IMG/VR virus record: IMGVR_UViG_3300032236_002285
Span: 124,001 to 188,000 of that record
Direction: 5' to 3' (one strand)
DNA length: 64,000 nucleotides
Made by a program: the position numbers and the translations under genes. This document shows positions 177 to 63,566 of this stretch, piece by piece. The number at the start of each line of letters is the position of its first letter. The stretch's first letter is position 1. The notes under the pieces were generated by a model. It worked only from the letters and a program-made list of their open reading frames with translations. It did not search any database and had not been told where the DNA came from.

Positions 177-1073
177 TTAAAATCCAAAACACTTTGATAT
201 ATTCTTATAATGCTTAACTTTTCCGTGATGATGGAATAGTTTAATATGTGGGAATTTAATTTTAATTCTGTGATATTCTTGAGATTTAACATCCTTACTT
301 AAATAGTAAGTTTTTGATTCTTCCGGTGATATTTTTTTAATAGTATTAGATTTAATTACTACATCATTCTCTAAGTAAATAATTTTTACAGTTACAAATC
401 TTGCTGATGGATCTTGTTTTCCTTGTCCCATTTCAAAAAGATGTGCAGTATCAATTAAGCTATCATCAATACCTTCATTCTCAATGATGTATTTTGAAAT
501 AGATTCACATCTTGCTTTAGCTAAACCTTTATTATTTGGTTCGTAACCTTTTGCTTTAAGTTCGTTTTGTAGTTTTATTGACAAACCTTGTTTATCAGTT
601 GATGATTGAATTTGAATACCAATGATTGTATGGTTACTTGATTCAATATTATTAATTACTTGTGAAACACTATCAGCCATTTCAGGTGAAATAGTATAAA
701 CGCCAGAAGCAAAATATTGATTATCGCCAAAAATAATCTTTTCACCTTTTATAACTGTTTCAGGTGCTGTTTCTGTCAATTCTTTAAAAAGTGTATCAAC
801 AACTGTTGAGTCTAAGTTATAACCTTTTTTTTGTAATCTTTCTAATGATTTTTCATCAGTTACTTTTTTATGTAAAGTTTTTGTAACTTCTTTACCAGGC
901 CACTTAACCTCGATGCCACTTTTGTTTACTTTTATAGGTCCAGGTCCACTTGGTGATGCCTTCATTTGACCGGGTAATAATGAACCAGCAGCTATAGCAG
1001 TACCTAAAAGAGCATCTTTCCAACCCTCTTCCTCATTGATTTGAAATTCATCAAATTTTTTAATATTCTTCAT
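177..1073 (-). CDS. OmpA/MotB-like peptidoglycan-binding domain protein with capsid-targeting-like N-terminus
   Basis: N-term MKNIKKFDEFQINEEE, hydrophobic LLGTAIAAGSLL; C-half YFASG...SSTD...NKGLAKARCESISKYI...SARFVTVKI matches the OmpA C-terminal pattern. Confidence 0.6.
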   Translation of the reverse strand: MKNIKKFDEFQINEEEGWKDALLGTAIAAGSLLPGQMKASPSGPGPIKVNKSGIEVKWPGKEVTKTLHKKVTDEKSLERLQKKGYNLDSTVVDTLFKELTETAPETVIKGEKIIFGDNQYFASGVYTISPEMADSVSQVINNIESSNHTIIGIQIQSSTDKQGLSIKLQNELKAKGYEPNNKGLAKARCESISKYIIENEGIDDSLIDTAHLFEMGQGKQDPSARFVTVKIIYLENDVVIKSNTIKKISPEESKTYYLSKDVKSQEYHRIKIKFPHIKLFHHHGKVKHYKNISKCFGF

Positions 1074-1084
1074 AAGTGTATATA

Positions 1085-1888
1085 TTATTTAAATTTATTT
1101 GGGAATATATGTCTCCACTCGTGACCTTGTGGAACATCTGAGACTTTAACACCAAATATCTTTTTTTCTGGACAAGTGTCCTTACCATCCATTAAGAAGT
1201 TATTATTACAAGCCCAAACTTCTACATTTCTTTGTAGTAATTGACCTACTGAAAAAGGAAATCTAATTCCTGTTTCATTTTCAATACCAGTGATTCTACC
1301 ATCTGGTGATTTAGTAACAACTATTTCTAATCTTGGGTTTCTTTTATTAGTGAATTTAACTTCTCTTTCGTGTATAGACTCATCAATTAAATCAGCCGCT
1401 GGATTGATTTCAGTTTGAATTCTATCCATTCTTTTTCTTTCGTTATCTTCTTTATAGATTTTATCTATTAGTTTGAATAATTTAATTCTATAAGATTCTT
1501 TAGATCTAATTCTTTCACATAAACCGGAATTATTACCAATAAATAGTTTCCATTTATTTACACACTTTTCTTCTCTTGCTGGAAGTCCAGTATCTGTGTA
1601 TACTAGAGTATGTCTATCATTTGATATAATTAAATCAACATCATCAAATCTAACAACATATATAACGCTATAATATTCTGATTTAACTCCATTTTCAACA
1701 CTATCTGCTGCTTTAGACATCCAAGCAGGTAACCTCATTTCTTCACTCTGTATATCATGAATTTCATATGGATTATTGTCTTTGACTTTTTCAAGACGAT
1801 GTATCATATCCAATGTGATTTTATCATCATTGGTATCTTTCTTAAAGTAATCTAAGAACCCTTCATTATAAGATTTTAAGTGTTTCAT
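1085..1888 (-). CDS. hypothetical protein with MKHLKSYNE N-terminal motif
   Basis: ORF track 1085..1894; ATG at 1888 lies 6 nt downstream of AATATATA. Confidence 0.75.
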   Translation of the reverse strand: MKHLKSYNEGFLDYFKKDTNDDKITLDMIHRLEKVKDNNPYEIHDIQSEEMRLPAWMSKAADSVENGVKSEYYSVIYVVRFDDVDLIISNDRHTLVYTDTGLPAREEKCVNKWKLFIGNNSGLCERIRSKESYRIKLFKLIDKIYKEDNERKRMDRIQTEINPAADLIDESIHEREVKFTNKRNPRLEIVVTKSPDGRITGIENETGIRFPFSVGQLLQRNVEVWACNNNFLMDGKDTCPEKKIFGVKVSDVPQGHEWRHIFPNKFK

Positions 1889-1906
1889 TAACACTATATA
1901 TTATTT

Positions 1907-2779: not shown

Positions 2780-2838
2780 ATTATAGTTGTTTTTTTGTAT
2801 TTTATATATTAGTGACATGTAAGTTTATTTGAAAAAAA

Positions 2839-2869: not shown

Positions 2870-2873
2870 CTGT

Positions 2874-3636: not shown

Positions 3637-3656
3637 AAAAATAAAACAAGACTATC

Positions 3657-6282: not shown

Positions 6283-6654
6283 ATGAATAAAACAAATTTT
6301 ATAGAGTTTATTAAAGAGTTAGGATTTGCGCAAGTTTGGCAGACAAATCCTAACTATTTTAGTTTAACAACTGACGTGATTGGTCTCGCTAATCAAAATT
6401 ATCAAGCTTTTTGTGACCAATTAAACGTTCATCTTGATGATGAAAATGAATTGGCACAATTATCACTCTCACAACTGAGTACTCATACGAGTGCTGGTAA
6501 AAGTTTTGGTAGATTTGACTTAAAAACATTTGGTGAACCAGGTGATTTTCAGATGCAGATCTTTATGAGTTTTGTGAAAGGTGCTTTTAAGAATCCACCA
6601 AATAATATAATTCAATATATGAGAGATAAAAAAATCAAAAGTATTCTAAAATAA
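6283..6654 (+). CDS. hypothetical protein, C-terminal RDKKIKSIL helix
   Basis: ORF track 6259..6654; likely ATG 6283. Confidence 0.7.
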   Translation: MNKTNFIEFIKELGFAQVWQTNPNYFSLTTDVIGLANQNYQAFCDQLNVHLDDENELAQLSLSQLSTHTSAGKSFGRFDLKTFGEPGDFQMQIFMSFVKGAFKNPPNNIIQYMRDKKIKSILK

Positions 6655-6679: not shown

Positions 6680-7066
6680 ATGAATTATGATCAAGAAATA
6701 ATAATTATAGAAATGACACCTTTTATATTTGAAGATGGTAATACTTACTATTTTAAAATAGTTAAAAGAGGTTCTTCTAATGATTATCATGATCTTTTTG
6801 TTTATGAAAAAATCAAAACAGAAACCAAAAATATCTTTGGTAGAGTAAAAATTGATGAGTGTTTCAATAAGATAAACAAAAGTCCTGAGCTCGTATCTAC
6901 AAGTTTAGATACGAATGAAATTAAAAGAAATATTAAAAAAATATTGATTGCTACTAAAGCTAACCACCGATTAAAAAATTGGGATGGTTTTGTTGGTGAC
7001 ATACCTAATGATGTTAAAACGGCTCTTAAAAGAGAGAGTTCTTTGAAAAACATTTTAGGTGAATAA
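6680..7066 (+). CDS. hypothetical protein, C-terminal RESSLKNIL helix
   Basis: 128-aa ORF. Confidence 0.7.
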   Translation: MNYDQEIIIIEMTPFIFEDGNTYYFKIVKRGSSNDYHDLFVYEKIKTETKNIFGRVKIDECFNKINKSPELVSTSLDTNEIKRNIKKILIATKANHRLKNWDGFVGDIPNDVKTALKRESSLKNILGE

Positions 7067-7076
7067 TATATAGTAA

Positions 7077-7559
7077 ATGATTAAATTTAGTAAAATGGTA
7101 ACTGAAAATGCTAGTACATCTGGTTTTAAGTTAGGATTAGATGTTCATGGAGTTATAGATGCTATGCCTGAGTTCTTTGCTTTTCTAACTGATTCATTTG
7201 TTAAAAATGGTGGTGAAGTTCACCTAATAACTGGTGGTCATTGGAACGAAGGATTTGAAAAACAACTAACTGAATGGGGTATAAAATGGTCACATAAATT
7301 TTCAGTTTATGACCATCTAATTGAAACTGGTGCTAATATTGTTGGTGAAATTCAATTCCCAGATGGAACAATTCAAAAGAAATTTGAAGATGGTCTTTGG
7401 GACCATGTTAAGTCTGACTATTGTAAACAACATAATATATCATTACATATTGATGATACCTTGGTGTATAATGATTTTTTCCAAACACCATTTGCTAGAT
7501 TATGGTCACATAATCAAAAACCAAAAGCGTCTCATAAAGACCTAAGACACTTAAAATAA
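7077..7559 (+). CDS. HAD-like protein (degenerate motif I)
   Basis: GLDVHGVI, LITGG, LHIDD; preceded by AATATATA at 7065-7072. Confidence 0.55.
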   Translation: MIKFSKMVTENASTSGFKLGLDVHGVIDAMPEFFAFLTDSFVKNGGEVHLITGGHWNEGFEKQLTEWGIKWSHKFSVYDHLIETGANIVGEIQFPDGTIQKKFEDGLWDHVKSDYCKQHNISLHIDDTLVYNDFFQTPFARLWSHNQKPKASHKDLRHLK

Positions 7560-8970: not shown

Positions 8971-9042
8971 GGTCGGGTGACCGAGTGTTTTAGGTGGAGG
9001 CCTGCAAAGCCTTTAACGGTGGTTAGAATCCATCCCCGACCT
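8971..9042 (+). tRNA. tRNA-Cys (GCA), CCA not encoded
   Basis: Acceptor GGTCGGG/CCCGACC, D stem ACC/GGT, anticodon stem GAGGC/GCCTT with loop CTGCAAA (GCA at 9004-9006), T stem GGTGG/CCATC, discriminator U73 as expected for Cys. Confidence 0.92.
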
Positions 9043-9056
9043 CTAATTTTATATTA

Positions 9057-11152: not shown

Positions 11153-11178
11153 AAAAACCCACTCTAAAGTGGGTTTTT
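11153..11178. terminator. bidirectional intrinsic terminator
   Basis: AAAAACCCAC-TCTAAA-GTGGGTTTTT between convergent genes. Confidence 0.85.
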
Positions 11179-12512
11179 TATTTTAAGTATCTTTCTAAGT
11201 CAGATTTTATTTCACTATTAAGTAATTTTGAATCTACATCACCATAGTCTGAAAAGTTTGGTTGCATTTCATAGGTAAAATATTGTTCACCACACCAGTC
11301 CTTGAATATATCAAATAAACTATTATCCTTTAGTCTATCTGCATCTTCGTTATCTATCCAGTCATTGCTATAAGGGATAGTATAAAATGTATCAAGTTCT
11401 TGATACTCTTTTCTTGTTTGATTTCCATCAGCATCTTTAGTTGTATAGTATTTAGTGACTTCTCTTTTTTCTTTTGTATATGTAAATTCCTTTTCAACTA
11501 TCTCATCAAACTCATTTAGAATTTCTTGGTAGTTAGCATCAACATGAGCATTCATTTCCCAATCTCCAATAGTTTGTTTAACCTCTTGACAGATTTCAGA
11601 ATTTTTACATAGTTTTTTTAATGTATCATAATATCTTTCTTTTAGTAAATAGTTAATAACTTCTTCTTCTGATTTACCTTCCAAGTTTTCATTTTCTGAT
11701 TCTGATATAAAATTTTCTAAACCACCAACTTCTTTAATCATAGCTTTGACTAATAGAATTCCATTTTCTTTATCTAATGTATATTGAAACATTGATGATG
11801 TATCTGGTTGATAATCAGAACCATAGTAATTATCATACATATTTTCTTCTCCGTTTACTAAAATATCTTTATAACTTGACTTTCTTGATAACATAATATC
11901 AGACATGTCTTCTAGATTAACTTCAACATAAACTTTACCTTCTTTGATAATAGCATCTGACCAGTTGTAATATTTTACAAGTTCTTCTTCAGTGAATTCA
12001 AATGTATCTTTTGATTTAGCAAAAATAGCAATATAATCATTTGCTTCTAATAATTCAGGCTCACTGGAATTCCAGTTATCTGTAAAAAATAAACCACCTT
12101 TAATTTCTACACCATCTATATCGCCAATATTACCATCCGCGTCGTGTATTGATACTTCAGCATTTGCTTCTTCTGCTATAATTGAACAAGCAAATTGAAA
12201 TGTAGAAGTAACATCATCGTTTTTAATTTTTTGTCCTTTATGAATGCTAATCCAGTAAGAAGGTATAACTTTATCACCAGCTTTTACTTTATCAGTAAAA
12301 ACATCTTTTTCACTTTCTACCCATTCTCCATTTTTATAAGCACCTCGTTTAACTTTTTCTGAAAATCCAAATTCTACTGAAACAAAATATCCAGCATCTG
12401 TTATTTCTAACATATAGTCGGTGATATCTTCTTCGGTTAGTTTCCAAAGAGTTTTCTCTTCTATTTGCTCTTTAATAGATTCTTTAATAAAGTCTAGATA
12501 CTTTTTAATCAT
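11178..12512 (-). CDS. acidic hypothetical protein with MIKKYLDFIKE N-terminus
   Basis: 444-aa ORF; TATATATA 4 nt upstream. Confidence 0.8.
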   Translation of the reverse strand: MIKKYLDFIKESIKEQIEEKTLWKLTEEDITDYMLEITDAGYFVSVEFGFSEKVKRGAYKNGEWVESEKDVFTDKVKAGDKVIPSYWISIHKGQKIKNDDVTSTFQFACSIIAEEANAEVSIHDADGNIGDIDGVEIKGGLFFTDNWNSSEPELLEANDYIAIFAKSKDTFEFTEEELVKYYNWSDAIIKEGKVYVEVNLEDMSDIMLSRKSSYKDILVNGEENMYDNYYGSDYQPDTSSMFQYTLDKENGILLVKAMIKEVGGLENFISESENENLEGKSEEEVINYLLKERYYDTLKKLCKNSEICQEVKQTIGDWEMNAHVDANYQEILNEFDEIVEKEFTYTKEKREVTKYYTTKDADGNQTRKEYQELDTFYTIPYSNDWIDNEDADRLKDNSLFDIFKDWCGEQYFTYEMQPNFSDYGDVDSKLLNSEIKSDLERYLK

Positions 12513-14254: not shown

Positions 14255-15481
14255 GTGGATATAAAAGAAAATATAATTTTAGAAACCTTCCTAAGACTTA
14301 CTAGTCGTACATATCCTCATGGTAGTGAGGATGTGTTGGTAGAATCCATGATTGAACAAGGTATTTTTCCAGTAGATTTACAAAAAGATATACACGGTAA
14401 CTATTTCTATAAAATAGGTGAGTCAAGAACTATATTTGCTTCACACTTAGATACCGTTAGTAAAGAAGAAACTGAGGTTGTTCATACATTTGATGGTGAT
14501 ATTATTGGTACTGATGGTAAGACTACCTTAGGTGCTGATGATAAGGCGGGAGTTACCGTTATGTTACATTTAATGAAGAATGGTATTCCAGGTCTTTATT
14601 ACTTTTTTATTGGTGAAGAAGTTGGTTGTATTGGTTCTGGTTTAGCTTCTTCAATGTCTATTCAAGACTTCAAAGGTAAATATGATAGAATTATTTCTTT
14701 TGATAGAAGGGATGTTGATTCTGTTATTACTTATCAATCATCAACAAGATGTTGTTCTGATGCTTTTGCTGATGCTTTGGCAAAACAATTAAATTATTCC
14801 GGATTAAAATATAGAAAAGATGAAGGTGGTGTTTATACAGACTCTGCTGAATTTACTTCTATTATACCAGAGTGTACTAACTTATCTGTAGGTTATTACA
14901 AAGAGCATACTTTTAACGAGACTCAAGATATTAAACACCTTGAAAGATTAGCTAATGCTTGTTTATCAGTTGATTGGGAAAATCTTCCAACTGAAAGAGA
15001 CATGACTAAAAAAGAATATCGCTCTTATGGTTCATATAACTATGGTGGTTATAAAAACTATTCTAATTATGCAACACCTGCTACCAAATCTAATGATTGG
15101 AGAAGAAGAGATTATGGATATCACGATGATTGGTATGACCAAAGCACAAGTAGTTGGGTTACAGATGATGATGCACCAATAGATAATAGTGTAGATGATA
15201 TTGACTGGGAAATTGAGTATGGTAAATACAAAAAAACACGCAGAAAAAATAAAGGTAAAACTTATTTTGATAACGGATCTGGTGGTTTAGTTCCATTCAA
15301 AGAAGCAAAATATCCTAACTATCTTGGTGATAAAAATTATTATGATGGTTTGATTGATAAAATTGTCAAAGATGATTTAACAAGAGAAGATTTAGAAATT
15401 GTTAAAGATCAATATTTAGATATGACTAAAGAAAATGATAGAATGTTTTACCAATATCTTTTAGGAAATATTATCGACTAA
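14255..15481 (+). CDS. M20/M28 family metallopeptidase with low-complexity Y/D-rich tail
   Basis: ASHLDTV, LGADDKAG, GEEVG, SFDRR, YTDSA, NLSVGYY..H; probable GTG start 14255. Confidence 0.85.
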   Translation: MDIKENIILETFLRLTSRTYPHGSEDVLVESMIEQGIFPVDLQKDIHGNYFYKIGESRTIFASHLDTVSKEETEVVHTFDGDIIGTDGKTTLGADDKAGVTVMLHLMKNGIPGLYYFFIGEEVGCIGSGLASSMSIQDFKGKYDRIISFDRRDVDSVITYQSSTRCCSDAFADALAKQLNYSGLKYRKDEGGVYTDSAEFTSIIPECTNLSVGYYKEHTFNETQDIKHLERLANACLSVDWENLPTERDMTKKEYRSYGSYNYGGYKNYSNYATPATKSNDWRRRDYGYHDDWYDQSTSSWVTDDDAPIDNSVDDIDWEIEYGKYKKTRRKNKGKTYFDNGSGGLVPFKEAKYPNYLGDKNYYDGLIDKIVKDDLTREDLEIVKDQYLDMTKENDRMFYQYLLGNIID

Positions 15482-15683
15482 AATCAATAATATCAGAAGA
15501 TTTAATAATTTCATCAGGAGCATTTTTTATTTCAGAATTTGGAACATTATGGCTAACTTTGTAAGAAACTTTAGATATTTTCTCAACAATTTTAACAGGA
15601 GTAATCATGTCATTGTACCAGTATTCTATAAGAACGATGTCACCTTCTTTATAAAACGATTTAAATTCTAATAAAAACTTCAT
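15471..15683 (-). CDS. small SH3/KOW-like protein
   Basis: GDIVLIEY...VKIVEK...YKV; divergent from a shared TATATATA. Confidence 0.5.
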   Translation of the reverse strand: MKFLLEFKSFYKEGDIVLIEYWYNDMITPVKIVEKISKVSYKVSHNVPNSEIKNAPDEIIKSSDIIDFSR

Positions 15684-22909: not shown

Positions 22910-22937
22910 TTTATAAATTAAATTTAATATATACATT

Positions 22938-23327
22938 ATGATAAAGAAATATCTACAATTTATAAAAGAAGCTGATGAAACAACAGAGGCTCAACCTGCT
23001 GAAAAATATCAAGATACTGGTAAATATACTGAGCTAAAAGATGAGGTTAAATCAATGATTGAAAAAACCATTGAAAAGAATGGTGGTGAGTTCAAATCAT
23101 TTGTAGATAAATTTACAAAATCTCCAGAAGATACTAAGATTGAAGGATTTATTAACGATTCTGATATTTATGAATTTTATTTAAAATTCAGAAATGATAT
23201 TGATGAGTTATTAAATAATATTAAGTATTTTAATGAGGTTCCAAGTGACTCAAACACTTTTGGTCTTTATGACTATATCATACATGGAACTGAAAAAGCT
23301 GTATCAGAAATCGTTAAAGAGTTATAA
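22938..23327 (+). CDS. hypothetical protein with MIKKYLQFIKE N-terminus
   Basis: 129 aa; AATATATA 22926-22933. Confidence 0.8.
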   Translation: MIKKYLQFIKEADETTEAQPAEKYQDTGKYTELKDEVKSMIEKTIEKNGGEFKSFVDKFTKSPEDTKIEGFINDSDIYEFYLKFRNDIDELLNNIKYFNEVPSDSNTFGLYDYIIHGTEKAVSEIVKEL

Positions 23328-30181: not shown

Positions 30182-30182
30182 T

Positions 30183-40395: not shown

Positions 40396-40450
40396 AATAG
40401 TTTTTTATTTATTGTATATATTAATAGTAAAAAATTTAATATATACAATT

Positions 40451-41419
40451 ATGATTAAAAGATATTTAGAGTTTATAAAAGAATCAAATTATAATGGCTT
40501 TAACTCACTTGGTGAGTGGGTTGAAACTCTTATGGATGATGAGTATGTTAGAAACATAATCGCTCGTTATACAAAAGATTCTGATGCTTCTATTAATTTA
40601 TCAAATGCTATTAATATCTTAGATGAGAAAGCTCAATCTGAAATTAAATCACAAATTGATAATTATTTACAAAATGGTATTGAAGAAAAAGAACCTCAGT
40701 TTTTAGTTTCAACTGATTTAGAAGAGTTAACAGAAGCACTTGCTGAAGAAATAACAATGGCTGGAAAAGGCATATTTACTTCTTTCTTAAAGGCTTTAAC
40801 ATCTTTAGGTCAAAAAGAAGTTGGACCAAATTGGTCTAAATGTCCAGATGACTTTTTACTATACTATTATTATCCTAATTTACAATCAGAACATGTAAAA
40901 CAAGTATTTTCAAGATTTAAATCTTTAAGTAGATATTTGGACCACGTTGATTATCAAAAGAATGAAGTTGATTTATACTTTGGTATTAAATGTGACGGCA
41001 ATTTTGAATATGGTTTACATTATGATGAACCAACACCAATTGGTCAATTTAAACTAAATCAATCTGTTATTAAATGGATTTGTCAGATTGAATCTAAATC
41101 CGCTCATTCATTAAAGAAGGAATTAGTTAATTTAAGTTTAGCTGATGTAATGACATTGAGTAAGATTAAATTAGATATGAAAGACTTTAATCCTGGGTTC
41201 CACGAGTCAAAAGATGTTGTGAAAATTCAAGATAAGATAATCTCTTTTGGTTACAAAGGTTTAGGTAAATGGGATAATGGTAAATTTGATGAAGGTGAAT
41301 TTATGAATATTAAAAATAACTTTACAACTTGGTTACTTACGAAGAAATGGGGTAGTAGAGTTTTAATTAGTGTTAAACCAACATCATACTATGTTTACAT
41401 ACATATAAAATTAAAATAA
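40451..41419 (+). CDS. hypothetical protein with MIKRYLEFIKE N-terminus
   Basis: ATG 40451, 5 nt after AATATATA 40438-40445. Confidence 0.8.
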   Translation: MIKRYLEFIKESNYNGFNSLGEWVETLMDDEYVRNIIARYTKDSDASINLSNAINILDEKAQSEIKSQIDNYLQNGIEEKEPQFLVSTDLEELTEALAEEITMAGKGIFTSFLKALTSLGQKEVGPNWSKCPDDFLLYYYYPNLQSEHVKQVFSRFKSLSRYLDHVDYQKNEVDLYFGIKCDGNFEYGLHYDEPTPIGQFKLNQSVIKWICQIESKSAHSLKKELVNLSLADVMTLSKIKLDMKDFNPGFHESKDVVKIQDKIISFGYKGLGKWDNGKFDEGEFMNIKNNFTTWLLTKKWGSRVLISVKPTSYYVYIHIKLK

Positions 41420-41422
41420 GAT

Positions 41423-41734
41423 ATGAAATACTTAAAGAAATATAACGAGAATGTAGAACAACAAGACCCTGAGTTTGCTATTGCTAAGATTAAAGGTAGA
41501 TATCCTGAAGATATGGCTAAAGAAATGTTAGACAAAGAAGTTAAACAATGGATTCCAGATGATAAGGATCCTGATTTCTACTCCACTTCAGGAAATGGTG
41601 AAGCAGAAGATGTTATTATTGATCAAATGATTGGTTGGTTTGAGAAAAAGTATTATGCTTTATCTGAAGAAAACTTTCAAAAGGTAAAAGAACTGATTCT
41701 AAAAGAGTATGAATTCTTAAACTTCAACTACTAA
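41423..41734 (+). CDS. hypothetical protein with MKYLKKYNE N-terminus
   Basis: 103-aa ORF. Confidence 0.75.
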   Translation: MKYLKKYNENVEQQDPEFAIAKIKGRYPEDMAKEMLDKEVKQWIPDDKDPDFYSTSGNGEAEDVIIDQMIGWFEKKYYALSEENFQKVKELILKEYEFLNFNY

Positions 41735-41779
41735 ACTAATAAAAAAAAATTTTCTATAACAAGAAAAGTTTTTTTGTTT

Positions 41780-42214
41780 ATGGAAAAACCAAGTAAAGAA
41801 GATATAATGAAAAAATGGGCTCCTGTTTTAGAGTCTATGGGTATGACTGGATCTCAATTGGATAATTTATCACAACTAACCGAAAATCAACCAAATCAAA
41901 TATTAGAAGAAACTAAAACTGAAGAGTTTCCAAGTTTATTACCAATAGCTATGAGGGTAGCCGCTAGAACAATATCAAATGATTTAATATTTGCTTCACA
42001 AGAAGAAATTGACCAAGTTAAAAAGAAAGTTCAATCTGAAAATCGTGATGGTAAGATTGAAGCCATTATAGAAGATAAAGAATTTACTGAGAAGAAATTA
42101 GAAGATGATGAAGAGTATAAGGAATTGATGAAAAAAGGTGTTAAACCTATGTCGGCACCTTCAGGAACTTTATTCTATTTAGATTATAAGTATGGAGGAG
42201 ACAAAGATGAGTAA
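41780..42214 (+). CDS. mini protein resembling the N-terminal part of a T4 gp23-type major capsid protein
   Basis: KEDIMKKWAPVLESMG, LLPIAMRVAARTI, KPMSAPSGTLFYLDYKYG; about 144 aa; internal RDGKIEAII helix. Confidence 0.7.
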   Translation: MEKPSKEDIMKKWAPVLESMGMTGSQLDNLSQLTENQPNQILEETKTEEFPSLLPIAMRVAARTISNDLIFASQEEIDQVKKKVQSENRDGKIEAIIEDKEFTEKKLEDDEEYKELMKKGVKPMSAPSGTLFYLDYKYGGDKDE

Positions 42215-45744: not shown

Positions 45745-47154
45745 TTAGCAGTCGTAACAATCTACTGTTCCTCTACCACTACAATTATCACATTCTACTG
45801 TACCATCTCCGTTACATTCTGGACAATCTGTTTCATTTCCCTCTTCATCTTCAATGTGACCTAATCCTTCACAATTTGAACAATCAACACTTCCATCTCC
45901 ACCACAATCGTCACATTCCATTCTACCCGTTCCGCCGCAAGTATCACAAGGTCTAACATAGTCACCACCTGTATCTTCTAAGAAATAACAACCACCAGTA
46001 TCTTCACTTGAAATAGTTTTTTTACGAGGATTGAAATATTTAAGTGTATCTAAGTAAGGGAAATTATCCATACTAGCATCAGTTAAATTAACCGTTAAAT
46101 CTAAATTAACTCTACTTCCATCCGGTGCTACAGCTTGATTACTATCTGAACTATTATTATATTCTTTATAATACCAACCATTTTCTTTAGCATAATCTCT
46201 GAATAATTGAACATCTGAATCATTTACCGTATAAACTCTGTCTAAGAATTCTTTACCATCTCTTAACTTCCAAAGTAAAGCTCTACCAACAATTTTTTCA
46301 GTATCATCCATTGATTTGTAAATAACTAAACCAACTTCTGGATTAGCAGTGTAAACTTCTAACCAACTATCTGGAGCACCAGCCATACAAGACGAACCTA
46401 AAGTCCCACTTCTTTGATAATAATTTGAGTTATGATACCAGTGAGCAATATCAGAACCCCTAACAACTTCAAAGTAAGAGAATTTATCATTCATCTTATC
46501 AATAGTAGCTTTATATAAATTTACAAATTGTTCAAAATCTCTATCAGCAAATGTAGTAATACCAGCAGCTCTTAAAAGTGCTCTCATAGCTCTACCTACT
46601 TTTACTTCTTGTCTGTTTGTTGACCAAACTTTTTTAATTCTCTCATCAACAGCTCTTATCTTTTCAACATTATAAACACCTTGACCAACATCATTACCTG
46701 ATTGGTCTTTGAATTTAACCCAAGCATAAGTTTTACCTGATTGTTCAGATGTTACTCTAGCAATAACCTCACCTAAATCTGTAGATTGTGGTTTATAAGG
46801 CTCAGAGCCTTCTTCAAATGTATAACCTAGTTGAGTAAATAATTTTGCATTTGAATCTTTGTGTTTTAACCAACCACCACCAGAACCGATAAATCTAACT
46901 ACTTCTTTAGTATCACCTAAAATCTCTTGAGCTTTTCTATCAGGAGTAAAAGTAATTGTATCGTTTTTTGTGAACTCAATATCAAGGTAATTAGCTTGAA
47001 CATTGTAGTCATTATTTTCAGCATCTAAAATAGCTTTCGCTACAGGGCTGTCAATCTTAGTCATTGCTTTTCTGAAGTTATCGGAATAAACAACATTAGA
47101 TTCTAGAATAAATTCTAGGTTTTCGTTTATAAAATCTGAATATTTTTTAATCAT
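45745..47154 (-). CDS. SCM/RALLW/PYLDT family protein with capsid-targeting-like N-terminus and C-terminal CxxCxGxG zinc finger
   Basis: MIKKYSDFINE; LGSSCM, GRALLW, FLDRVY, FPYLDT; six CxxC units at C-terminus. Confidence 0.8.
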   Translation of the reverse strand: MIKKYSDFINENLEFILESNVVYSDNFRKAMTKIDSPVAKAILDAENNDYNVQANYLDIEFTKNDTITFTPDRKAQEILGDTKEVVRFIGSGGGWLKHKDSNAKLFTQLGYTFEEGSEPYKPQSTDLGEVIARVTSEQSGKTYAWVKFKDQSGNDVGQGVYNVEKIRAVDERIKKVWSTNRQEVKVGRAMRALLRAAGITTFADRDFEQFVNLYKATIDKMNDKFSYFEVVRGSDIAHWYHNSNYYQRSGTLGSSCMAGAPDSWLEVYTANPEVGLVIYKSMDDTEKIVGRALLWKLRDGKEFLDRVYTVNDSDVQLFRDYAKENGWYYKEYNNSSDSNQAVAPDGSRVNLDLTVNLTDASMDNFPYLDTLKYFNPRKKTISSEDTGGCYFLEDTGGDYVRPCDTCGGTGRMECDDCGGDGSVDCSNCEGLGHIEDEEGNETDCPECNGDGTVECDNCSGRGTVDCYDC

Positions 47155-51813: not shown

Positions 51814-51857
51814 ATTTAATTTTTTATTTTATATATTAATTTTTTTAATATAGCTTG

Positions 51858-54800: not shown

Positions 54801-56150
54801 ATTATTAAAAAATGCTTGTTTAACAATATTTGAAAAAGGCGAATCATATCCTAATAATTCATTTTCTACTATTGAGTATGTAGCGGATTGTGTACCAAAT
54901 GTTGTTGTATAAATAGAACCATTAGCAATCGTTGACTGATTCATATTAGAATTTACTACAAAGTTATAACCTCTACCTGCGTTGTTAGGTGAGTTAGCTT
55001 TTTGATAAGGTAAACCATAACTATCAAAGCTAGCAAAATAACTTTGAGATGCTGTATATAGCGAATTTAAAGTACCTTTTTTCCAATTAGTATTAATAAG
55101 TGTTCCTATATTCCAAACAGAACCATTACCATCCCAGTTTATTTTGTTATAATATTGGCCAAATATACCAGAATTCCATTTACCGTTAAAAACACCTCCT
55201 CTAAAGTTACTTTTACTTAAATATGGTGGAAAATAAGTTACATCAACAATCCAACTTGATTGTGTTGGTCCAATATTCCACTTATAAATAAATCCTTCTT
55301 TGTAATCTACTCCATTATATGTGAAGTCACCATTCATTATTTTTATTCTATTAGTAATAGAAGCGGTTGCATATGAATAAGAGCCTGTTGTTGTAAAATC
55401 TGATGTAATATTTGTCCAACTTGCTGTTGAGCTTCTAACATAAAATCCAGTACCAGAAACACCACTATTTTTACCCCAGTTTTGAGTAGTTACATAAATG
55501 TTATCAACATATATAATATTATTTTGATAATAACTAAACTTATTGTCAAAGTAACCACTTTTTGTTGTTATAGACCTATTGGCATGTAAAAACTCAGAAT
55601 TGTTTCTTATGTAGTATATTTTAATAAAATCATCATCAGTATGTGATAAATAAGGTAAAACTCCTTTATAATCTATATCTAGTGTAACCTTACATTTATC
55701 TATAGCTAATACTTTATAACCATCTCTTCCTTTTTTATACTTATTCTTTTGAATTAGTAAATCACTATCATAAGTACCATTTAGTATAAATACTTTATCA
55801 CCTACTTTTAATTCTGAGTTAACCTCTGTATAAAAAGTTGTTTTATATGTGCCGTCGTTATTATCATAAGGTTCTACCCAATTTAATAATTTAGGACTAA
55901 ATGTTTTATTTGAGTTTGAAATAAGACCTGCTAGTGGGTCATAGCCTACAAGATTAATATTATTACCAAGATTATTAAGTTCAGCCTTTGTTATTAATTG
56001 AGGTTTTGAAGATATTACATTAGCAACGGTGTTAATACTTGAGTTTGTTAAAGTAGGAACATTACTAGTAGAATAATTAACACTTATAGGATCTGCTGGA
56101 ATATCAAATATTTTTTTTCTAATATTTGGATCTACTGAATATGTTGCCAT
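51858..56150 (-). CDS. 1430-aa putative structural protein with extensive W/F-x-x-G repeats
   Basis: WINGTFSNG...WENGDWRNGNWYG; AATATATA upstream (56174-56181). Confidence 0.7.
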   Translation of the reverse strand: MATYSVDPNIRKKIFDIPADPISVNYSTSNVPTLTNSSINTVANVISSKPQLITKAELNNLGNNINLVGYDPLAGLISNSNKTFSPKLLNWVEPYDNNDGTYKTTFYTEVNSELKVGDKVFILNGTYDSDLLIQKNKYKKGRDGYKVLAIDKCKVTLDIDYKGVLPYLSHTDDDFIKIYYIRNNSEFLHANRSITTKSGYFDNKFSYYQNNIIYVDNIYVTTQNWGKNSGVSGTGFYVRSSTASWTNITSDFTTTGSYSYATASITNRIKIMNGDFTYNGVDYKEGFIYKWNIGPTQSSWIVDVTYFPPYLSKSNFRGGVFNGKWNSGIFGQYYNKINWDGNGSVWNIGTLINTNWKKGTLNSLYTASQSYFASFDSYGLPYQKANSPNNAGRGYNFVVNSNMNQSTIANGSIYTTTFGTQSATYSIVENELLGYDSPFSNIVKQAFFNNCEFNNSHLINVELKNTVANNSKFEQTKSINSYFTKSVLKNSSYNSDNIIKIFAYDELTASEHPSIVGQTYSNVNDVVQKVYKFYIDKNGYERLQLGDVFYIKGLRINDKTKNVINYFDKKFKIGSWVEYTEEYAGLTASGKRGYQYSAFLSTPLDNSYKFTSATFSYSGIKYQTINYVVNPNSSYYSIDLWVSRFDINDNITSENLNFNTDTSVYDATTLQGPNTIGNVIDVTSAYIVDSDFDSGLIENSDWNSGSHIESNNDNNITIPSISGGTYNLSINSSNYIVATTSYDSANYESNLISVGDIVFLDSVDFNYGSVSRIPDTYKVVSNTSGVYQLKEIGTVSQLISLSASNGYFYTNGAQNRYGHIKKLKIDKSNIKSGFLRRSYINGSLIQNLDLNYLDKDLSNLDNIRGLVVSDSIFSNNGNILSNATYENSFFLNNGSDIWNSGIIQNSIWINGTFSNGVIRDSRWVNGTFLNGWFYNSKTFNGYATTSNPYYYSENINSYYKSGTLPNNRNSWQDGIFINGDFYKGDWESGTFSGGRFYYSNFYNGNIIGGVIGSNQVSTTDTRIYNGTVSYTTVDNATLYASDTSYSGNINQNINWLNGVFNNGVFGSNISQTAKNSAIWYNGSFNGGQFISMGRWKNGTFNGGKFLSAYGWTQSSSATQSDYGWESGTFNGGEFGNANGLTNSTWFTGEFDGGIFKGRVWNNGVFSYGELQGSGTSSPVSGLTCSNASAFVDSYSQSYWGLWRNGIFTNTKDRFIKDQKFYTTPVRAINLELSNKPPKTAKFKNSLWLSGTFSHPNGEMNGSVWLDGAFEKGKFIGSSFNPYVKRNGSTQSSFNLNDSTCYWENGYLDQSEFYISQWRNGTFNIGTASGMIWKNGTANYMNAFNIFWENGDWRNGNWYGSSFEFNGSVTNDYVLQILHRGMSWSGTSSCHVWNIFLDSSGQEVSIVNATASTSSGWVFGNSNDLVLLTPF

Positions 56151-56197
56151 CTATTTAACAAAAGAATTTTATGTATATATTATTTATTAAGACTTTC

Positions 56198-58738: not shown

Positions 58739-59629
58739 ATGTTTATTAAAAAATTTGAAGATTTTAATCAGTTTAATTTAATTATAGAAAGACTACATAT
58801 AAATAAAGAAATTGATGAATATTCTGATAAAATTTATCCTATAATATCCGATTCTGATAAATTTTATTTTGAATTTACCGATATACCCAGTAAATTAAAT
58901 ATATCTAAACTGGTTATAAATATTAAAGATATGGAACCTGGTTTATCTGGTCAATTAGATTTAAATAAATCTAAAGAGACTAAAAACGGATGGATTATCT
59001 ATGTAGATTTGAAGAAAAAATTTCATTTATATACACTTAAACATGAGTTGAATCATGCTCTTAGACTTACTTTAATTGGTAAGGATAAAATGATTAAAAA
59101 CCTAAACTATATAAAATCTCAAAATATATTCATATCTAAAGATAATGAAATGGAATACTTTTTCTATTTAATATATCTGGCAAATGATGAGGAAATAAAC
59201 TCAAAGATTATGGAAACTAATGGGTTTATAAGAGAAGTTATGACTAAATGGGAAGTTAATAAATTAACAAAAGAACAATTTGATTATATAATAAAAAGTA
59301 CTCATGCTTTTAAACAATCTAATGAATTAATTAATTTTAAATGTGATGATTTGTTTAAGAATTATGATGAAAATAAATTAAATAAGTTATTTTGTATATT
59401 AGAGGAAAATAAATCCGAACTGGACAGAATACAAGATAGTAAATTTTATAAATTAAAATTGATAATTAAGATATTTAAAGATATATTTAACAATAAGACC
59501 GGTTTTAATCAAGATGATAAAAATATCTATAAACCTAAAAAGGGTAAAAAATTTTATGATACTTGGATACCATCACAAGGAGATAAACTAAAAAAAAGAA
59601 TCTATTCATTATATGAACACTACCAATAA
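58739..59629 (+). CDS. protein with HExxH zinc-binding motif and MFIKKFEDF N-terminus
   Basis: LKHELNHA plus downstream DEE. Confidence 0.6.
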   Translation: MFIKKFEDFNQFNLIIERLHINKEIDEYSDKIYPIISDSDKFYFEFTDIPSKLNISKLVINIKDMEPGLSGQLDLNKSKETKNGWIIYVDLKKKFHLYTLKHELNHALRLTLIGKDKMIKNLNYIKSQNIFISKDNEMEYFFYLIYLANDEEINSKIMETNGFIREVMTKWEVNKLTKEQFDYIIKSTHAFKQSNELINFKCDDLFKNYDENKLNKLFCILEENKSELDRIQDSKFYKLKLIIKIFKDIFNNKTGFNQDDKNIYKPKKGKKFYDTWIPSQGDKLKKRIYSLYEHYQ

Positions 59630-60062
59630 CATGCAATATGGAGTAATTTATATTAAAATTTGCCCTAAGGGTTCTGGTGCTTGGATAAAACATTGTCATA
59701 TCTTATCAGCAACACCAATGTCATTTCAAAAAAATGTAGTTGATATTAAGAATAATATTAACTCAAAATACTCAGATGATATTGTGATTAAAATGGATCT
59801 TAGTATTCACCCCGGTTGTACTACAACGGCTGAAAGTGTTGAAAAGGTAGCAACTGATATGTATAATCAATTTTGTGAATTAGCCGAAAGACAAGGTATT
59901 CCTAATTCAATTAGATGTGTTTATTCAGTTGGTGAAATTAAAGATGTTAGTGTAGATTCAACACATCATATAATGCCGGTAAATGGTAAATATGATGATG
60001 TTATGATTAGAGTTGGTCACTTCTTAGACGAATTTGATGAACCTGGATTATTTAAAATATAA
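59613..60062 (+). CDS. hypothetical protein
   Basis: 149-aa ORF. Confidence 0.65.
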   Translation: MNTTNNMQYGVIYIKICPKGSGAWIKHCHILSATPMSFQKNVVDIKNNINSKYSDDIVIKMDLSIHPGCTTTAESVEKVATDMYNQFCELAERQGIPNSIRCVYSVGEIKDVSVDSTHHIMPVNGKYDDVMIRVGHFLDEFDEPGLFKI

Positions 60063-60084
60063 AAACCTCTCAATTGAGAGGTTT
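60061..60084. terminator. bidirectional terminator, identical to 150-173
   Basis: AAAACCTCTCAATTGAGAGGTTTT. Confidence 0.85.
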
Positions 60085-60087
60085 TTT

Positions 60088-60432
60088 TTATTTCTTTCTA
60101 ATTATCATTTTATAAACTTTATCATTATTGATAAAATATTCACCACTTTTCTGTTCAAATTCTGGTCCTATTGTTTTTGCAATCTCACTTCCTAAATCTT
60201 TGATTTTATCTTTAATTGCAAATGCCCAAATATTAATTGTTAATATACCATCTTTTATAATCAGTGCTGAATTATTAGATTTATCTAACTTTACATTATC
60301 AGAAAAGTAGTTTGGATTCAAACCGTATTTTTTCAAGATAGAAAATATATTTTTTGATATTGATTTTAATTCTAAATCTGTATTGGCATCTTCATTTATC
60401 GACCAATTTTCAAATAATTTTAAATATTTCAT
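60088..60432 (-). CDS. hypothetical protein with MKYLKLFE N-terminus
   Basis: 114 aa; AATATATA at 60455-60462. Confidence 0.75.
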   Translation of the reverse strand: MKYLKLFENWSINEDANTDLELKSISKNIFSILKKYGLNPNYFSDNVKLDKSNNSALIIKDGILTINIWAFAIKDKIKDLGSEIAKTIGPEFEQKSGEYFINNDKVYKMIIRKK

Positions 60433-60465
60433 AATGATTATTTTTTTATTAATGTATATATTAAT

Positions 60466-61188
60466 TTAAAAATTCATAATTATTAATTCTGTACCCATAA
60501 TTGTTATTTTAGAATCAAATTTACAATTAGGATAAAGCTCTTCTATTCCATCAAAGTAGTAATAGCTTAGTAAAAATCTACCTTTAATATTATTTAGAAC
60601 TTCAGCAAGTTCTTTATGAGTTTCTTTATTGAAATCGTGATTGATGTAATATTCTTCTTTACCAAAATAAGGAGGATCTACATAAAAGAATGTTGATTCA
60701 GAATCATACATCTCAATTACTTTTTTATAATCGTAGTTGTGTATTTTATTTATTTTATACAAGTGATACTCATAAGCTCGATATTTCATTTTAAGTATAT
60801 TGAACTCACTATTATCTCTCCAAGAGTCTTTTCCTATTTCATATGGTGATGAGCAGCAAAGTACAACTAACCAGTAAAGAGAAAGTAACATTTCATCCTT
60901 TTCGGTTATCATGTTTTTCAAGCAACTTCTGTAGTATTCTTCATCTACTTCAGTTTTTTTGAATATCTCAATAAAGTCAGGATTTTTTAGATTTTTGAAT
61001 AGTAAATAGTTTAGATTGTTTTTATCATTATAGATAAAATTAACATCCTTAAACTTAGTAAAATCTAGTGCAAAAAAAATACCAAACATTCCACCAAATG
61101 GTTCCACATAAGTGGAAATATTCGTAGGTATGTTTGGTATTATGAAATTCGCAAATTTAGATTTTTCTCCTAAGTAGGGTATTAGCAT
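60466..61188 (-). CDS. Dam-like (D12 class) N6-adenine DNA methyltransferase
   Basis: IPYLGEK, YVEPFGG, IYND, FFYVDPPY, FLLSYY. Confidence 0.88.
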   Translation of the reverse strand: MLIPYLGEKSKFANFIIPNIPTNISTYVEPFGGMFGIFFALDFTKFKDVNFIYNDKNNLNYLLFKNLKNPDFIEIFKKTEVDEEYYRSCLKNMITEKDEMLLSLYWLVVLCCSSPYEIGKDSWRDNSEFNILKMKYRAYEYHLYKINKIHNYDYKKVIEMYDSESTFFYVDPPYFGKEEYYINHDFNKETHKELAEVLNNIKGRFLLSYYYFDGIEELYPNCKFDSKITIMGTELIIMNF

Positions 61189-61197
61189 CTAAACTTA

Positions 61198-61431
61198 TTA
61201 ATTTTTTGACTTCACAGATTTCTTAATTTCTTTGTGAAGTTGCTTGAAGATAGATTTAACTTCTCCAAATTTCATTTCCCCACTAATTGCTGCCATATAA
61301 TCAGTTTCTAATTTACTAATTTTTTCATGAACAGGATAAACGGTTATAGCTTTTGTAGCTCTTGGTTTTCTTGTCTTTACATTAGAATTTGCTTCGGCTT
61401 TCATAGAAGGAGTTGTTTTTGAATTTTCCAT
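61198..61431 (-). CDS. small basic hypothetical protein
   Basis: 77 aa, Lys-rich. Confidence 0.65.
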   Translation of the reverse strand: MENSKTTPSMKAEANSNVKTRKPRATKAITVYPVHEKISKLETDYMAAISGEMKFGEVKSIFKQLHKEIKKSVKSKN

Positions 61432-61476
61432 ATGTTTTTATGTTATAAAAGTTATATTAAAAAAATGTTATTTGTT

Positions 61477-62586
61477 TTATTTTTTAAATTCTTTTTTATC
61501 ATTAGAAACATAAAAGTTATCAAAGTTGTAATATTTTTTATAGACTTCTTTAATCTTTTTCATATTAACATCATCTAGGATATCATAAACTGACCAACCT
61601 TCTGGATTAATATATTGATTAACATTCTTATATCTAAGAATCTCGTCTTTTTCCATTCTTACTTTATAATAATCTTTAACAAGATTGAATCTTTCTTTTG
61701 TTAAATACTTATCAGGATTTGTAATTACCTCTTTAACTGAATCAACTACACCATTAAAGTTTTTGTTAGAAGTTTGAGTTGAAATAGTATTAATACCTTG
61801 ATTATTAACTCTTGATAAATAACAATGTACATAATAAACTAAGCCTCTTTTTTCTCTAATTTCTTGATAAAGAGGAGATTTTAATCCTAATGATAACATA
61901 GCATTAATAAAGTGAACATAAGCAAAATCCTCTTCAATTATTGGAGAAAGAATAGCAATAGATGTTTTATCTTTGAATTCATTACTTAATTCCAAATCAA
62001 CATCATGATTTCCAAATTCTAAAGTTTTCTTAATTTCTCTTTTAGCAAAATCAATAGTGTTGTTTTTATAAGGCTTGTTCTTAGAAACATTAATGATTTT
62101 TGTTGGCTTAGCATATTGAAGTTCAAAAAAGTTCAAACAATCCATATACTTTAAGTTTTCCAAATCTTCTTTCAATCCAATTGGGTCAAAGTCACCAAAT
62201 AATTTACGAGAAAGATTTAACATATGTGTTTGAGTTTGGTCATTAAAACAATCCATATACTCTTCAAGTACGATATTTCTTTCATTCTCAAATTGTTCCT
62301 TAGTAACATTAAATTCACCAAGTAAGTCCATAAACTCACCTTTCCACTTATTTACTTTTTCATCTAAACCTGTTAGATAGAAAACGATTTCATTTGAACT
62401 CGTGTAAGCATTCCAATCAATACCATCTTTATCAAAATCTTCTTGAAGATGATCAAAGTTTTTACACATTAAATGTTCCATTAAATGGCTAATACCATAC
62501 CAACCTTTTTTCTCAAGGTTTGTTGAACCTTCATAAACTACATAAAAACCAGAAAGGTCTGTTTGAGATTTTAAATTTATTATCAT
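61477..62586 (-). CDS. M16 family zinc peptidase
   Basis: GISHLMEHL (HxxEH), NAYTS, ERNIVLEEY, LYQEIREKRGLVY. Confidence 0.92.
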   Translation of the reverse strand: MIINLKSQTDLSGFYVVYEGSTNLEKKGWYGISHLMEHLMCKNFDHLQEDFDKDGIDWNAYTSSNEIVFYLTGLDEKVNKWKGEFMDLLGEFNVTKEQFENERNIVLEEYMDCFNDQTQTHMLNLSRKLFGDFDPIGLKEDLENLKYMDCLNFFELQYAKPTKIINVSKNKPYKNNTIDFAKREIKKTLEFGNHDVDLELSNEFKDKTSIAILSPIIEEDFAYVHFINAMLSLGLKSPLYQEIREKRGLVYYVHCYLSRVNNQGINTISTQTSNKNFNGVVDSVKEVITNPDKYLTKERFNLVKDYYKVRMEKDEILRYKNVNQYINPEGWSVYDILDDVNMKKIKEVYKKYYNFDNFYVSNDKKEFKK

Positions 62587-62636
62587 TTATACACACTTTT
62601 ATTTAGTGTTATATATTTAGTAAGTAAGAATGTTTA

Positions 62637-63566
62637 TTATTTATTAATGTCAAATTTAGACCAAATAACAAGGTCACCATCTACATACTGTACTTCAGTA
62701 GGAACCCACTTTAAGTAAACAATAAATCTAGAAGATATTTCTTCACTAGTAATCTTAGTTCCAAATTTTGAATTTATTTTATCAGCAATACCTTGACAGA
62801 AAATAATTAATCTATCTTCTTCAACTACTGAAAATTCATTTATTGTTATAAATTGTTCAACATAGCTTTTTACCGATTTATTATAGTTTGCGGTTGTTGG
62901 ATTATCTGTTAGGTTTTTAGTAATTATTTTTGACCAGTTTTCTTTTAAGTCATCTTGTAAATAAGTAAGAGCTACTTCATGGTATTTTTCCATTAAACCA
63001 GGAATTTCGTTAATATAAAGCTGACCATAAGGTGTTTGATGATATCCATATTTATATCTAATTATGATTTCATCAACACCATTAAATAAAGCCCAACCAT
63101 CACCACCAAGAAAAATTTTATTTTTATCAAGTCCTAATTTATCGGCTGTAAAGTAAAGATAAACATCACAAAAACCATTTGTGCTATCTAATCTTGTTGA
63201 CTTATACCACTCAAAGAAATCCCTACCTGTTATTTTATTTGCTTCCTCTGAGAAGATAAGTTTAATAATTTCAAAAGTCCAACCTTTTTTCTCAAGTTCT
63301 GATTGTAGATATTGATAATCTTCTTCTGGTTTTGCATTTTCTCTTTTACAAAGGTCAGAAAAAGACAAAGTACTAAAATTTTCAGTTACTCCAATAATAT
63401 CATCAGAAAAAGTATCTCTTAATTCTATAAGTTCCTGTCTTTTATTATCAGCAATCATTTTTTTAACATCTGATTCTGATATAACAATTTGTTTTCCATT
63501 AACATCATAAACTACAATGTCTTCCTTAATGAATTCATTATACTTCTTCAACAACTTCTTCTTCAT
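62637..63566 (-). CDS. hypothetical protein with LKKYNEFIKE N-terminus
   Basis: 309-aa ORF. Confidence 0.75.
   Translation of the reverse strand: MKKKLLKKYNEFIKEDIVVYDVNGKQIVISESDVKKMIADNKRQELIELRDTFSDDIIGVTENFSTLSFSDLCKRENAKPEEDYQYLQSELEKKGWTFEIIKLIFSEEANKITGRDFFEWYKSTRLDSTNGFCDVYLYFTADKLGLDKNKIFLGGDGWALFNGVDEIIIRYKYGYHQTPYGQLYINEIPGLMEKYHEVALTYLQDDLKENWSKIITKNLTDNPTTANYNKSVKSYVEQFITINEFSVVEEDRLIIFCQGIADKINSKFGTKITSEEISSRFIVYLKWVPTEVQYVDGDLVIWSKFDINK

Follow-up and report, generated by a model that had tools for sequence, protein, structure and literature searches.

Genes with a common N-terminal leader in the window

The window analysed here, 64,000 nucleotides in length, comprises bases 124,001-188,000 of one virus record of 476,236 bp (IMGVR_UViG_3300032236_002285; 29.9% GC), and it comes from a huge phage that is related to LR756502 and LR745206, both uncultured 'Mahaphage' genomes. 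Several genes in the window encode proteins that open with a common short leader, of consensus M-I-K-K-Y-x-[QDE]-F-[ILV]-x-E, which resembles the capsid-targeting sequence (CTS) of the phage T4 internal proteins. The complete motif is found on about 18 proteins of the genome, five or six of them encoded in the window, and a partial leader is carried by perhaps 30 to 40 more. The original prediction had listed twelve such N-termini in the window. All twelve peptides were present, each at the N-terminus of its open reading frame (ORF), and the family proved larger than claimed. Five of the twelve carry the full leader, one a near-full and four a partial one, but the two that had been marked as weak, MIKFSKMVTE (7077..7559, plus strand) and MKFLLEFKSF (15471..15683, minus strand), do not fit the motif and were not counted as members. 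For the minus-strand genes, the coordinate given earlier was the low end of the ORF, with the initiating Met at the high end (1073, 1888, 12512, 15683, 47154, 60432 and 63566). The leader genes, with the upstream elements preceding them, are as follows (lengths in amino acids, aa).

11178..12512, minus strand: 444 aa; full leader MIKKYLDFIKE, then Ser (leader codons 12480-12512); cargo without a family match; TATATATA 4 nt 5' of the ATG
22938..23327, plus strand: 129 aa; full leader MIKKYLQFIKE, then Ala (22938-22970); hypervariable acidic linker, then a conserved helical domain; AATATATA 4 nt 5' of the gene
40451..41419, plus strand: 322 aa; full leader MIKRYLEFIKE, then Ser (40451-40483); AATATATA 5 nt 5' of the ATG
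45745..47154, minus strand: 469 aa; full leader MIKKYSDFINE, then Asn (47122-47154)
62637..63566, minus strand: 309 aa; begins MKKKLLKKYNEFIKE, then Asp; the full motif starts six residues past the Met; AATATATA not found 5' of the gene
177..1073, minus strand: 298 aa; near-full leader MKNIKKFDEFQINE, then Glu, with one extra residue ahead of I-N-E; OmpA-like peptidoglycan-binding protein; AATATATA 5 nt 5' of the gene
6283..6654, plus strand: near-complete candidate beyond the twelve; an internal ATG yields MNKTNFIEFIKE, then Leu (123 aa); no family match; AATATATT 4 nt 5' of the internal ATG
1085..1888, minus strand: 267 aa; partial leader MKHLKSYNE, the first half only, without [ILV]-x-E
41423..41734, plus strand: 103 aa; partial leader MKYLKKYNE; begins 3 nt past the stop codon of the 40451 gene
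58739..59629, plus strand: 296 aa; partial leader MFIKKFEDF
60088..60432, minus strand: 114 aa; partial leader MKYLKLFE; AATATATA 22 nt upstream

The start of the 322-aa gene is the ATG at 40451 and not the upstream TTG at 40412; the LR756502 orthologue begins MKIKNYIQFIKES. The LR756502 orthologue of the 1085..1888 protein likewise retains MKHLKSYNEG. Searches of the tagged proteins of the window against PHROGs and Pfam gave almost nothing besides the OmpA-like domain of the 298-aa protein (PF00691, E 1.3e-7), which follows a hydrophobic segment placed right after the leader. The 469-aa protein has a paralogue at genome coordinates 330774-332006, and its search against the ESM Atlas returned viral hypothetical clusters only.

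For the 129-aa protein, more than 1000 homologue clusters were found in metagenomes at E<=0.001, the 120 listed being 79-99% identical, and its homologues came from uncultured huge-phage records only. The contig that bears one of the listed homologues is 816,658 bp long. JGI lists these homologues under product names ('ClpP class serine protease', 'deoxyribodipyrimidine photolyase') that seem to be spurious. In the alignment of this protein (alignment A1), an invariant 11-residue leader is followed by an indel-rich acidic linker at residues 12-28 and then by the conserved domain, and Y5, F8, I9 and E11 are invariant in 23 metagenomic homologues. The AlphaFold2 model obtained from the same alignment had a mean pLDDT of 44, insufficient for a fold search; its low-confidence outline consists of a helix at residues 2-14, coil at 15-30 and helices thereafter.

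Enrichment and conservation of the leader motif

The genome-wide enrichment of the motif, which had been proposed as a check, was computed in several ways. A strict pattern, [KR].[YF].[DEQN]F[ILVQ].E, was searched in all six reading frames of the 476-kb genome and gave 13 matches, 12 of them directly after a start Met. In these 12 instances the Y, F and E positions are invariant, and the position matching the Ile of T4 is always I, L or V. An iterated position-specific scoring matrix (PSSM) retrieved 35 to 40 N-terminal instances, compared with 0 to 1 in shuffled proteomes at equal score, and 35 of the 38 matches scoring >=15 lay inside the first 12 residues. With a relaxed pattern covering the first half of the leader only, 56 N-terminal matches were counted against 5.6 expected from the internal rate. 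A motif derived from the functional positions of the T4 CTS, [YF]..F[ILV].E beginning at residues 3-12, was then counted in this genome, in three relatives (W01, W02 and W03 in our working names), in T4 and in four AT-rich control phages of 27-33% GC, namely phage G (first 220 kb), Pelagibacter phage HTVC008M, Pseudomonas phage PA5oct and Campylobacter phage CP220.

This genome: 18 N-terminal matches, 1.0 (0.98) expected
LR756502 (W01): 22 matches, 1.0 expected
LR756504 (W02): 18 matches, 1.45 expected
LR756500 (W03): 20 matches, 0.8 expected
T4: 3 matches (IPII, IPIII and gp61.1), 0.4 expected
CP220: 3 matches, 0.16 expected
HTVC008M: 0 matches, 0.04 expected
Phage G (220 kb): 0 matches, 0.05 expected
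PA5oct: 1 match, 0.34 expected

The full-motif leader family was not found in phage G (first 220 kb), HTVC008M or PA5oct, and CP220 had three CTS-like N-termini only. AT bias is therefore ruled out as the cause, because AT-rich control phages do not have a comparable excess. At the conserved positions, synonymous codons track the genome-wide usage (Lys, AAA 13 and AAG 9; Tyr, TAT 11 and TAC 4), and the constraint therefore acts on the protein and not on the nucleic acid. N-termini in the genome have a general excess of Lys at residues 2 and 5.

Two further observations concern the reference phages. The T4 protein gp61.1 (AF158101 18966-19130), 54 aa long and encoded beside the primase gene, begins MKTFKEFIKE, which is a full CTS-type motif. 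The three CP220 proteins (FN667788 35925-37275 and 59622-60116) begin MKFSDFLEE, in two paralogues, or MTFTEFINE, and all are annotated as hypothetical; they add CTS-type N-termini from one more remote T4-like lineage.

The leader as a portable module

With the leader removed, a BLAST comparison among about 48 tagged proteins detected similarity in only two pairs. Most of the tagged proteins in the genome have no family match. Those with a recognisable cargo, in addition to the OmpA-like protein of the window, are an Acb1-like 2H phosphoesterase in which both H-x-T motifs are present, an Rnl1-type RNA ligase, a protein with a CCA/polyA-polymerase head domain, a DEDD exonuclease, a NUDIX hydrolase, a DeoC-family aldolase, an ankyrin-repeat protein and a PQ-loop membrane protein. 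In every case the recognised domain begins 30 to 78 residues in. From their domains, these cargo types look like ejection or takeover proteins. The leader was absent from all homologues of the T4 core replication, packaging and baseplate proteins of the genome.

The RNA ligase aligns to T4 RnlA only from its own residue 24 on, and the leader with a short linker is therefore a 19-residue add-on. In LR756504, the homologues of the ligase, NUDIX and CCA-type enzymes start without a leader, and the 2H phosphoesterase retains one. In LR756502, 23 of 30 orthologues had a leader-like N-terminus by pattern, and inspection by eye showed one in each of the 29 aligned pairs. The full motif opens 20 proteins of LR756500, yet that genome has no homologue of any tagged protein from the present one; five of the ten leader proteins tested there are leucine-rich-repeat (LRR) proteins of one family. 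The members of that family carry MKYIKEYE-F-[IL]-x-E followed by the repeats (for example L145 13446-14282, L154 972-1730, L154 18758-19531, L161 11856-12545 and L160 13382-13912), and the family looks like a set of protein-binding modules that carry the tag. The leader is conserved, the linker behind it is hypervariable, and members of one enzyme family have gained or lost the tag between phages; in these respects it acts as a portable module.

Head genes and the protease-scaffold fusion

The genome contains a head module of T4 type, situated outside the window, with the following genes (genome coordinates).

54435-56162: T4-type portal protein (PF07230, E 4e-60)
59876-62038: 720-aa protease ORF (locus L001 1435-3351), between the portal and capsid genes
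62115-63809: gp23-like capsid protein (PF07068, E 6e-27)

The first ~170 residues of the protease ORF matched gp21 of T4, HTVC008M and CP220 by hhalign with a probability of 99% (E 5e-18), and the 'DHP' His and 'VSSR' Ser motifs are retained. The Pfam family PF03420 matches this ORF only below the cut-off. A phmmer search of the protease domain against PDB sequences gave no match, and profile-profile comparison was needed to identify the ORF as coding for a prohead protease of gp21 type (S77). Among cultured phages, PA5oct matches this protease best. It has virion proteins annotated by mass spectrometry, but no leader family, and its use as a proxy for tagged virion proteins was dropped for this reason.

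The remainder of the protease ORF is an acidic tail with 11 tandem 14-aa repeats, Y-S-E-Y-[IL]-A-E-N-L-D-K-N-I-x. In this scaffold-like tail the density of [LI]-x-E is 4.8 per 100 aa, compared with 1.3 genome-wide. After the repeats, the tail ends in a His/Glu/Asp-rich tract with duplicated 'EEDCGPM(G/S)HEEEGHE' units. The fusion is conserved in LR756502, LR756504 and LR756500, and the repeat array is retained in the first two and degenerate in LR756500. Several [IL]-A-E sites are also present in T4 gp22, among them Q-L-I-A-E-A at the start of the protein and W-L-A-E-N. In the capsid protein, the N-terminal region contains V-L-E and I-N-E sites, which are conserved in relatives. Both the leader and the T4 CTS are similar to the repeat core, Y-x-E-Y-[IL]-A-E. 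When Y or F was allowed in the core pattern, 38 matches were obtained in the proteome, consisting of 15-16 leaders, the 11 scaffold repeats and about 10 others. A complex prediction with two copies of the scaffold-repeat region and residues 1-60 of the 129-aa protein, run without controls, scored 0.00 and counts neither way.

Two partial-leader genes flank the head module, one just 5' of the portal gene and the other shortly 3' of the capsid gene; the latter encodes a long acidic tract, like T4 gp67. One gene of the window also has a link to the capsid protein.

41774..42214, plus strand: 146 aa; directly after two leader genes; BLASTP match to the gp23-like protein of the genome (E 6e-7)

This protein has only the N-terminal arm of the capsid protein in common with it (KKWAPVLE-MG, LLP-AM--A--TI), without the main fold. 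A counterpart of it is present in LR756502.

A promoter-like element upstream of leader genes

The octamer AATATATA, with extended consensus TTAATATATA, occurs in 181 copies in the genome, and 127 of these lie <=40 nt upstream of a gene start on the same strand. Their spacing falls into two sharp classes, 4-6 nt (50 genes) and 19-25 nt (55 genes). Copies in the window include those at 22926-22933, 40438-40445 and 7065-7072. An overlapping octamer, ATATATAA, had 68 of 146 copies so positioned. For the T4 late element TATAAATA, 15 of 153 copies were positioned before genes, and for this and other AT-rich octamers only 10-28 of 131-181 copies. Judged from this positioning, TTAATATATA is a genuine promoter-like element, and its 4-6 nt class would imply leaderless or near-leaderless mRNAs.

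The element, which stands before about 128 genes in all, is enriched on leader genes (15/38, compared with 113/612; Fisher p 0.005), and AATATATA, or TATATATA at the same 4-nt spacing, stands ahead of nine of the twelve genes originally listed. The earlier suggestion of a shared upstream element held, but nothing marks the element as specific to late synthesis; the gene for the T4 NrdA (ribonucleotide reductase) homologue, among others, is also preceded by it. The portal gene and most of the giant ORFs are preceded as well, and so are DnaJ-, DNA methylase- and homing-endonuclease-like genes, which were judged by N-terminal sequence only. No homologue of the T4 late sigma factor gp55 was found in the genome by phmmer. 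In one metatranscriptome run, 6% of the sampled words were recovered, in contigs, which cannot give transcript starts or timing.

Relatives of the phage and other genes of the window

In the phage collection, the genomes closest to this one are LR745206, LR756502, LR756504 and LR756501/3, which are uncultured and 635 to 735 kb in size, together with LR756500, of 462 kb. Genomes larger than 634 kb have been placed in the 'Mahaphage' clade, with Bacteroidetes as predicted hosts (Al-Shayeb et al. 2020, PMC7162821). A phmmer comparison with the T4 proteome identified homologues of gp17, gp20, gp4, gp25, gp41, gp43, gp44, gp46 and gp47, and of UvsX, RnlA and NrdA, which places the phage in the T4 superfamily as a distant member. 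Other features of the window are as follows.

8971-9043: tRNA-Cys(GCA) gene
43676-45424: gp46/SbcC-Rad50-like ATPase, 78% identical to its LR756502 counterpart
17762-22909, 24300-27029, 28268-32267, 32343-37382 and 48589-56150: run of giant ORFs (1715, 909, 1679, 1074 and 1430 aa)
28268-30181: collagen-repeat protein, within the giant-ORF run
30183-32267: Laminin_G_3/ConA-like protein, within the giant-ORF run

Most of the giant ORFs have AATATATA 16-24 nt ahead of them. They probably encode fibre or surface structures.

A proposed capsid-targeting function of the leader and its alternatives

In T4 IPIII, the first 10 residues are enough for encapsidation; residues 4 and 7 (Y and F) are the main determinants of targeting and residues 8 and 10 (I and E) those of processing, and gp21 cleaves after L/I-x-E (PMC9026906). 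In the T4 record, IPII and IPIII begin MKTYQEFIAE, and IPI begins MKTFKEFTS...ITE. The likeness to the T4 CTS that had been proposed for the window was borne out in that the invariant Y-x-x-F-I-x-E of the leader corresponds to the targeting and processing positions of IPIII, and head genes of gp20, gp21 and gp23 type are present. This spacing of the CTS residues was found in 18 proteins and was absent from the partial MKHLKxFNE group. The best reading of M-I-K-K-Y-x-[QDE]-F-[ILV]-x-E, from sequence comparison, is as the huge-phage counterpart of the T4 CTS. The complete leader, on ~18 proteins, is probably a capsid-targeting propeptide of T4 type, which would be cut after [ILV]-x-E, the cargo being packaged and entering the host with the DNA. 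We would extend this reading with far less assurance to the 30 to 40 partial N-termini of MKHLKxFNE/MKYLKxYE type, to which the genes at 1085, 41423, 58739 and 60088 of the window belong.

By analogy with T4, we infer docking, cleavage, packaging and ejection of the tagged proteins. In this scheme, the short amphipathic helix of the leader would dock the newly made protein on the scaffolding core of the prohead, which would be the repeat-rich C-terminal part of the protease-scaffold fusion protein. The shell would assemble around the core with its docked cargo, the gp21-like serine protease would cut after the Glu of [ILV]-x-E to free the cargo inside the head, and the cargo would leave with the DNA at infection. 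The likeness of the leader to the scaffold repeat is suggestive as a basis for the binding. A wider proposal, which we put forward as possible but doubtful, is that one T4-type tag, itself equivalent to a single unit of the scaffold repeat, serves in this clade of huge phages to load dozens of different proteins into the capsid beforehand, and that the phages would so inject a 'starter proteome' of ~10 times the diversity of that of T4.

Several observations weigh against the capsid-targeting reading. The extended set amounts to 8 to 10% of the genes, which is much to fit in a head, and many of the partial N-termini (MKHLKxFNE type) lack [ILV]-x-E. For several cargo types, namely the DeoC aldolase, NUDIX hydrolase, CCA enzyme and PQ-loop membrane protein, a reason for packaging is not apparent. 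In T4, gp61.1 has the full motif and is annotated only as hypothetical, with no internal-protein or virion annotation in the T4 record. The conservation of the leader between this genome and LR756502 exceeds that of the rest of the protein only modestly (62%, compared with 51-54%). HTVC008M and PA5oct have S77 proteases but no leader family, and the protease alone therefore does not predict the tag. Finally, a PSSM made from the repeats only recovered leaders weakly (6 of the top 40 in this genome and 3 of 40 in LR756502); because of this, and because it was seen after the fact, the leader-scaffold likeness is a mechanistic lead and not a result.

Some of these points would suit a different function. 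The leader would then be an amphipathic helix, portable between N-termini, that takes proteins elsewhere or binds something else, such as a membrane, a compartment for replication or assembly, a chaperone of the phage, or some protease that is not the prohead protease. Its CTS likeness would in that case be convergent helix chemistry. A general sorting tag could well be expected on 56 to 104 genes per genome, which is the size of the extended set, and on a PQ-loop membrane protein; the tagged DeoC, NUDIX, CCA and RNA ligase proteins are ordinary enzymes, whose T4 counterparts are not among the head proteins in the T4 reviews consulted, and the motif of gp61.1 goes with no virion annotation. 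Convergence would have to account, however, for the match of all four T4 functional positions at identical spacing, for the recurrence of the motif only in genomes that have S77 proteases and for a similar core repeated 11 times in the protease-scaffold protein. No candidate gene for another receptor or compartment turned up, none having been searched for. We regard this alternative as unlikely, although it is the one to be taken seriously beside capsid targeting.

An mRNA-level explanation, chance and paralogy are largely excluded. If the pattern arose in RNA or translation, from A/T-rich, unstructured 5' codons on leaderless or short-leader mRNAs just past TTAATATATA, the promoter-like motif 4 to 6 nt from the ATG in about 50 genes, several leader genes included, and the general enrichment of Lys at residues 2 and 5 would be understandable. 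Most genes with the 4-6 nt spacing are without a leader, however, and 23 of the 38 leader genes are without the motif; amino acids are conserved while their codons follow the genome-wide usage, AT bias does not explain Glu and Phe at a fixed spacing, and the AT-rich control phages lack the pattern. We consider this origin very improbable. Chance, compositional bias or the simple paralogy of one family would draw on the 30% GC content of the genome and on LR756500, where half of the ten leader proteins tested are of one LRR family, and deserves even less credence against 18 matches where about 1 is expected, 56 where 5.6 are expected, 0 to 1 in shuffles and only 2 cargo pairs similar by BLAST beyond the leader among about 48 proteins.

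If the tag works as in T4, it would be a predictor of internal or ejected virion proteins in an uncultured clade of the largest known phages, in which most genes have no assigned function. The large capsids could then be expected to carry a wide range of quickly evolving proteins for takeover and counter-defence, active ahead of any phage gene expression, and part of the gene expansion in these genomes would become easier to explain. The T4 targeting system, so far a T-even speciality, would extend to a distant branch of the T4 superfamily, and its Y/F/I/E code would be old. As for the binding, the tag could act by resembling a scaffold repeat. Phage engineering in laboratory systems might also make use of a tag of 11 residues by which arbitrary proteins are loaded into very large capsids.

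Comparison with known systems

The CTS of T4 IPI, IPII and IPIII was described by Mullaney and Black (1996), as summarised in PMC9026906 and PMC3012670, and CTS-like leaders are known on the polymorphic internal proteins of T-even phages (PMC3012670, PMC9026906). We found no paper in the literature that links capsid-targeting leaders to these huge phages. The leader described here shares with the T4 CTS its place at the extreme N-terminus, its length of 10 to 12 residues, its core, K-x-[YF]-x-[EQ]-F-[IL]-x-E, its unrelated cargo and a head of gp20/gp21/gp23 type. It differs in number, with about 18 complete and about 40 partial leaders per genome against 3 or 4 in T4, in an extra residue before the Lys pair (M-I-K-K-Y, compared with M-K-T-Y in T4), in the residue after the Glu, which is mostly Ser here and Ala in T4, and in a cargo that includes recognisable enzymes and repeat proteins; the present system is also known from sequence alone. 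Among the phages compared, CTS-type N-termini numbered three or four in T4, three in the T4-like CP220 and none in phage G, for which no S77 protease match was found either.

As in the polymorphic internal proteins of the T-even phages, the leader is kept while the cargo turns over, with no common tagged cargo between LR756500 and this genome. The tagged genes here are, however, distributed genome-wide in several loose clusters and not in one hyperplastic locus, and their scale is far larger. The giant phages phiKZ, 201phi2-1 and SPN3US (PMC5694885) also have many internal head proteins processed after Glu by a gp21 homologue, a cleavage that we propose here by inference, and some of their ejection proteins have transmembrane segments, as some tagged proteins do here. 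Their propeptides, on the other hand, are mostly 80 to 130 residues long with no common short leader, and their cleavage is at S/A/G-x-E or A-x-E (PMC5694885).

The protease domain is homologous to T4 gp21, and the C-terminal tail is, like T4 gp22, acidic, helical and dense in [IL]-A-E sites. Unlike in T4, the protease and the scaffold form one polypeptide of 720 aa, and the scaffold part is built of 11 regularly arrayed repeats, each of fourteen residues, with the His/Glu/Asp-rich tract after them. In comparison with the known T-even leaders, what sets the present system apart is the scale, the enzyme and repeat-protein cargo, and the repeat-built fusion of protease and scaffold.

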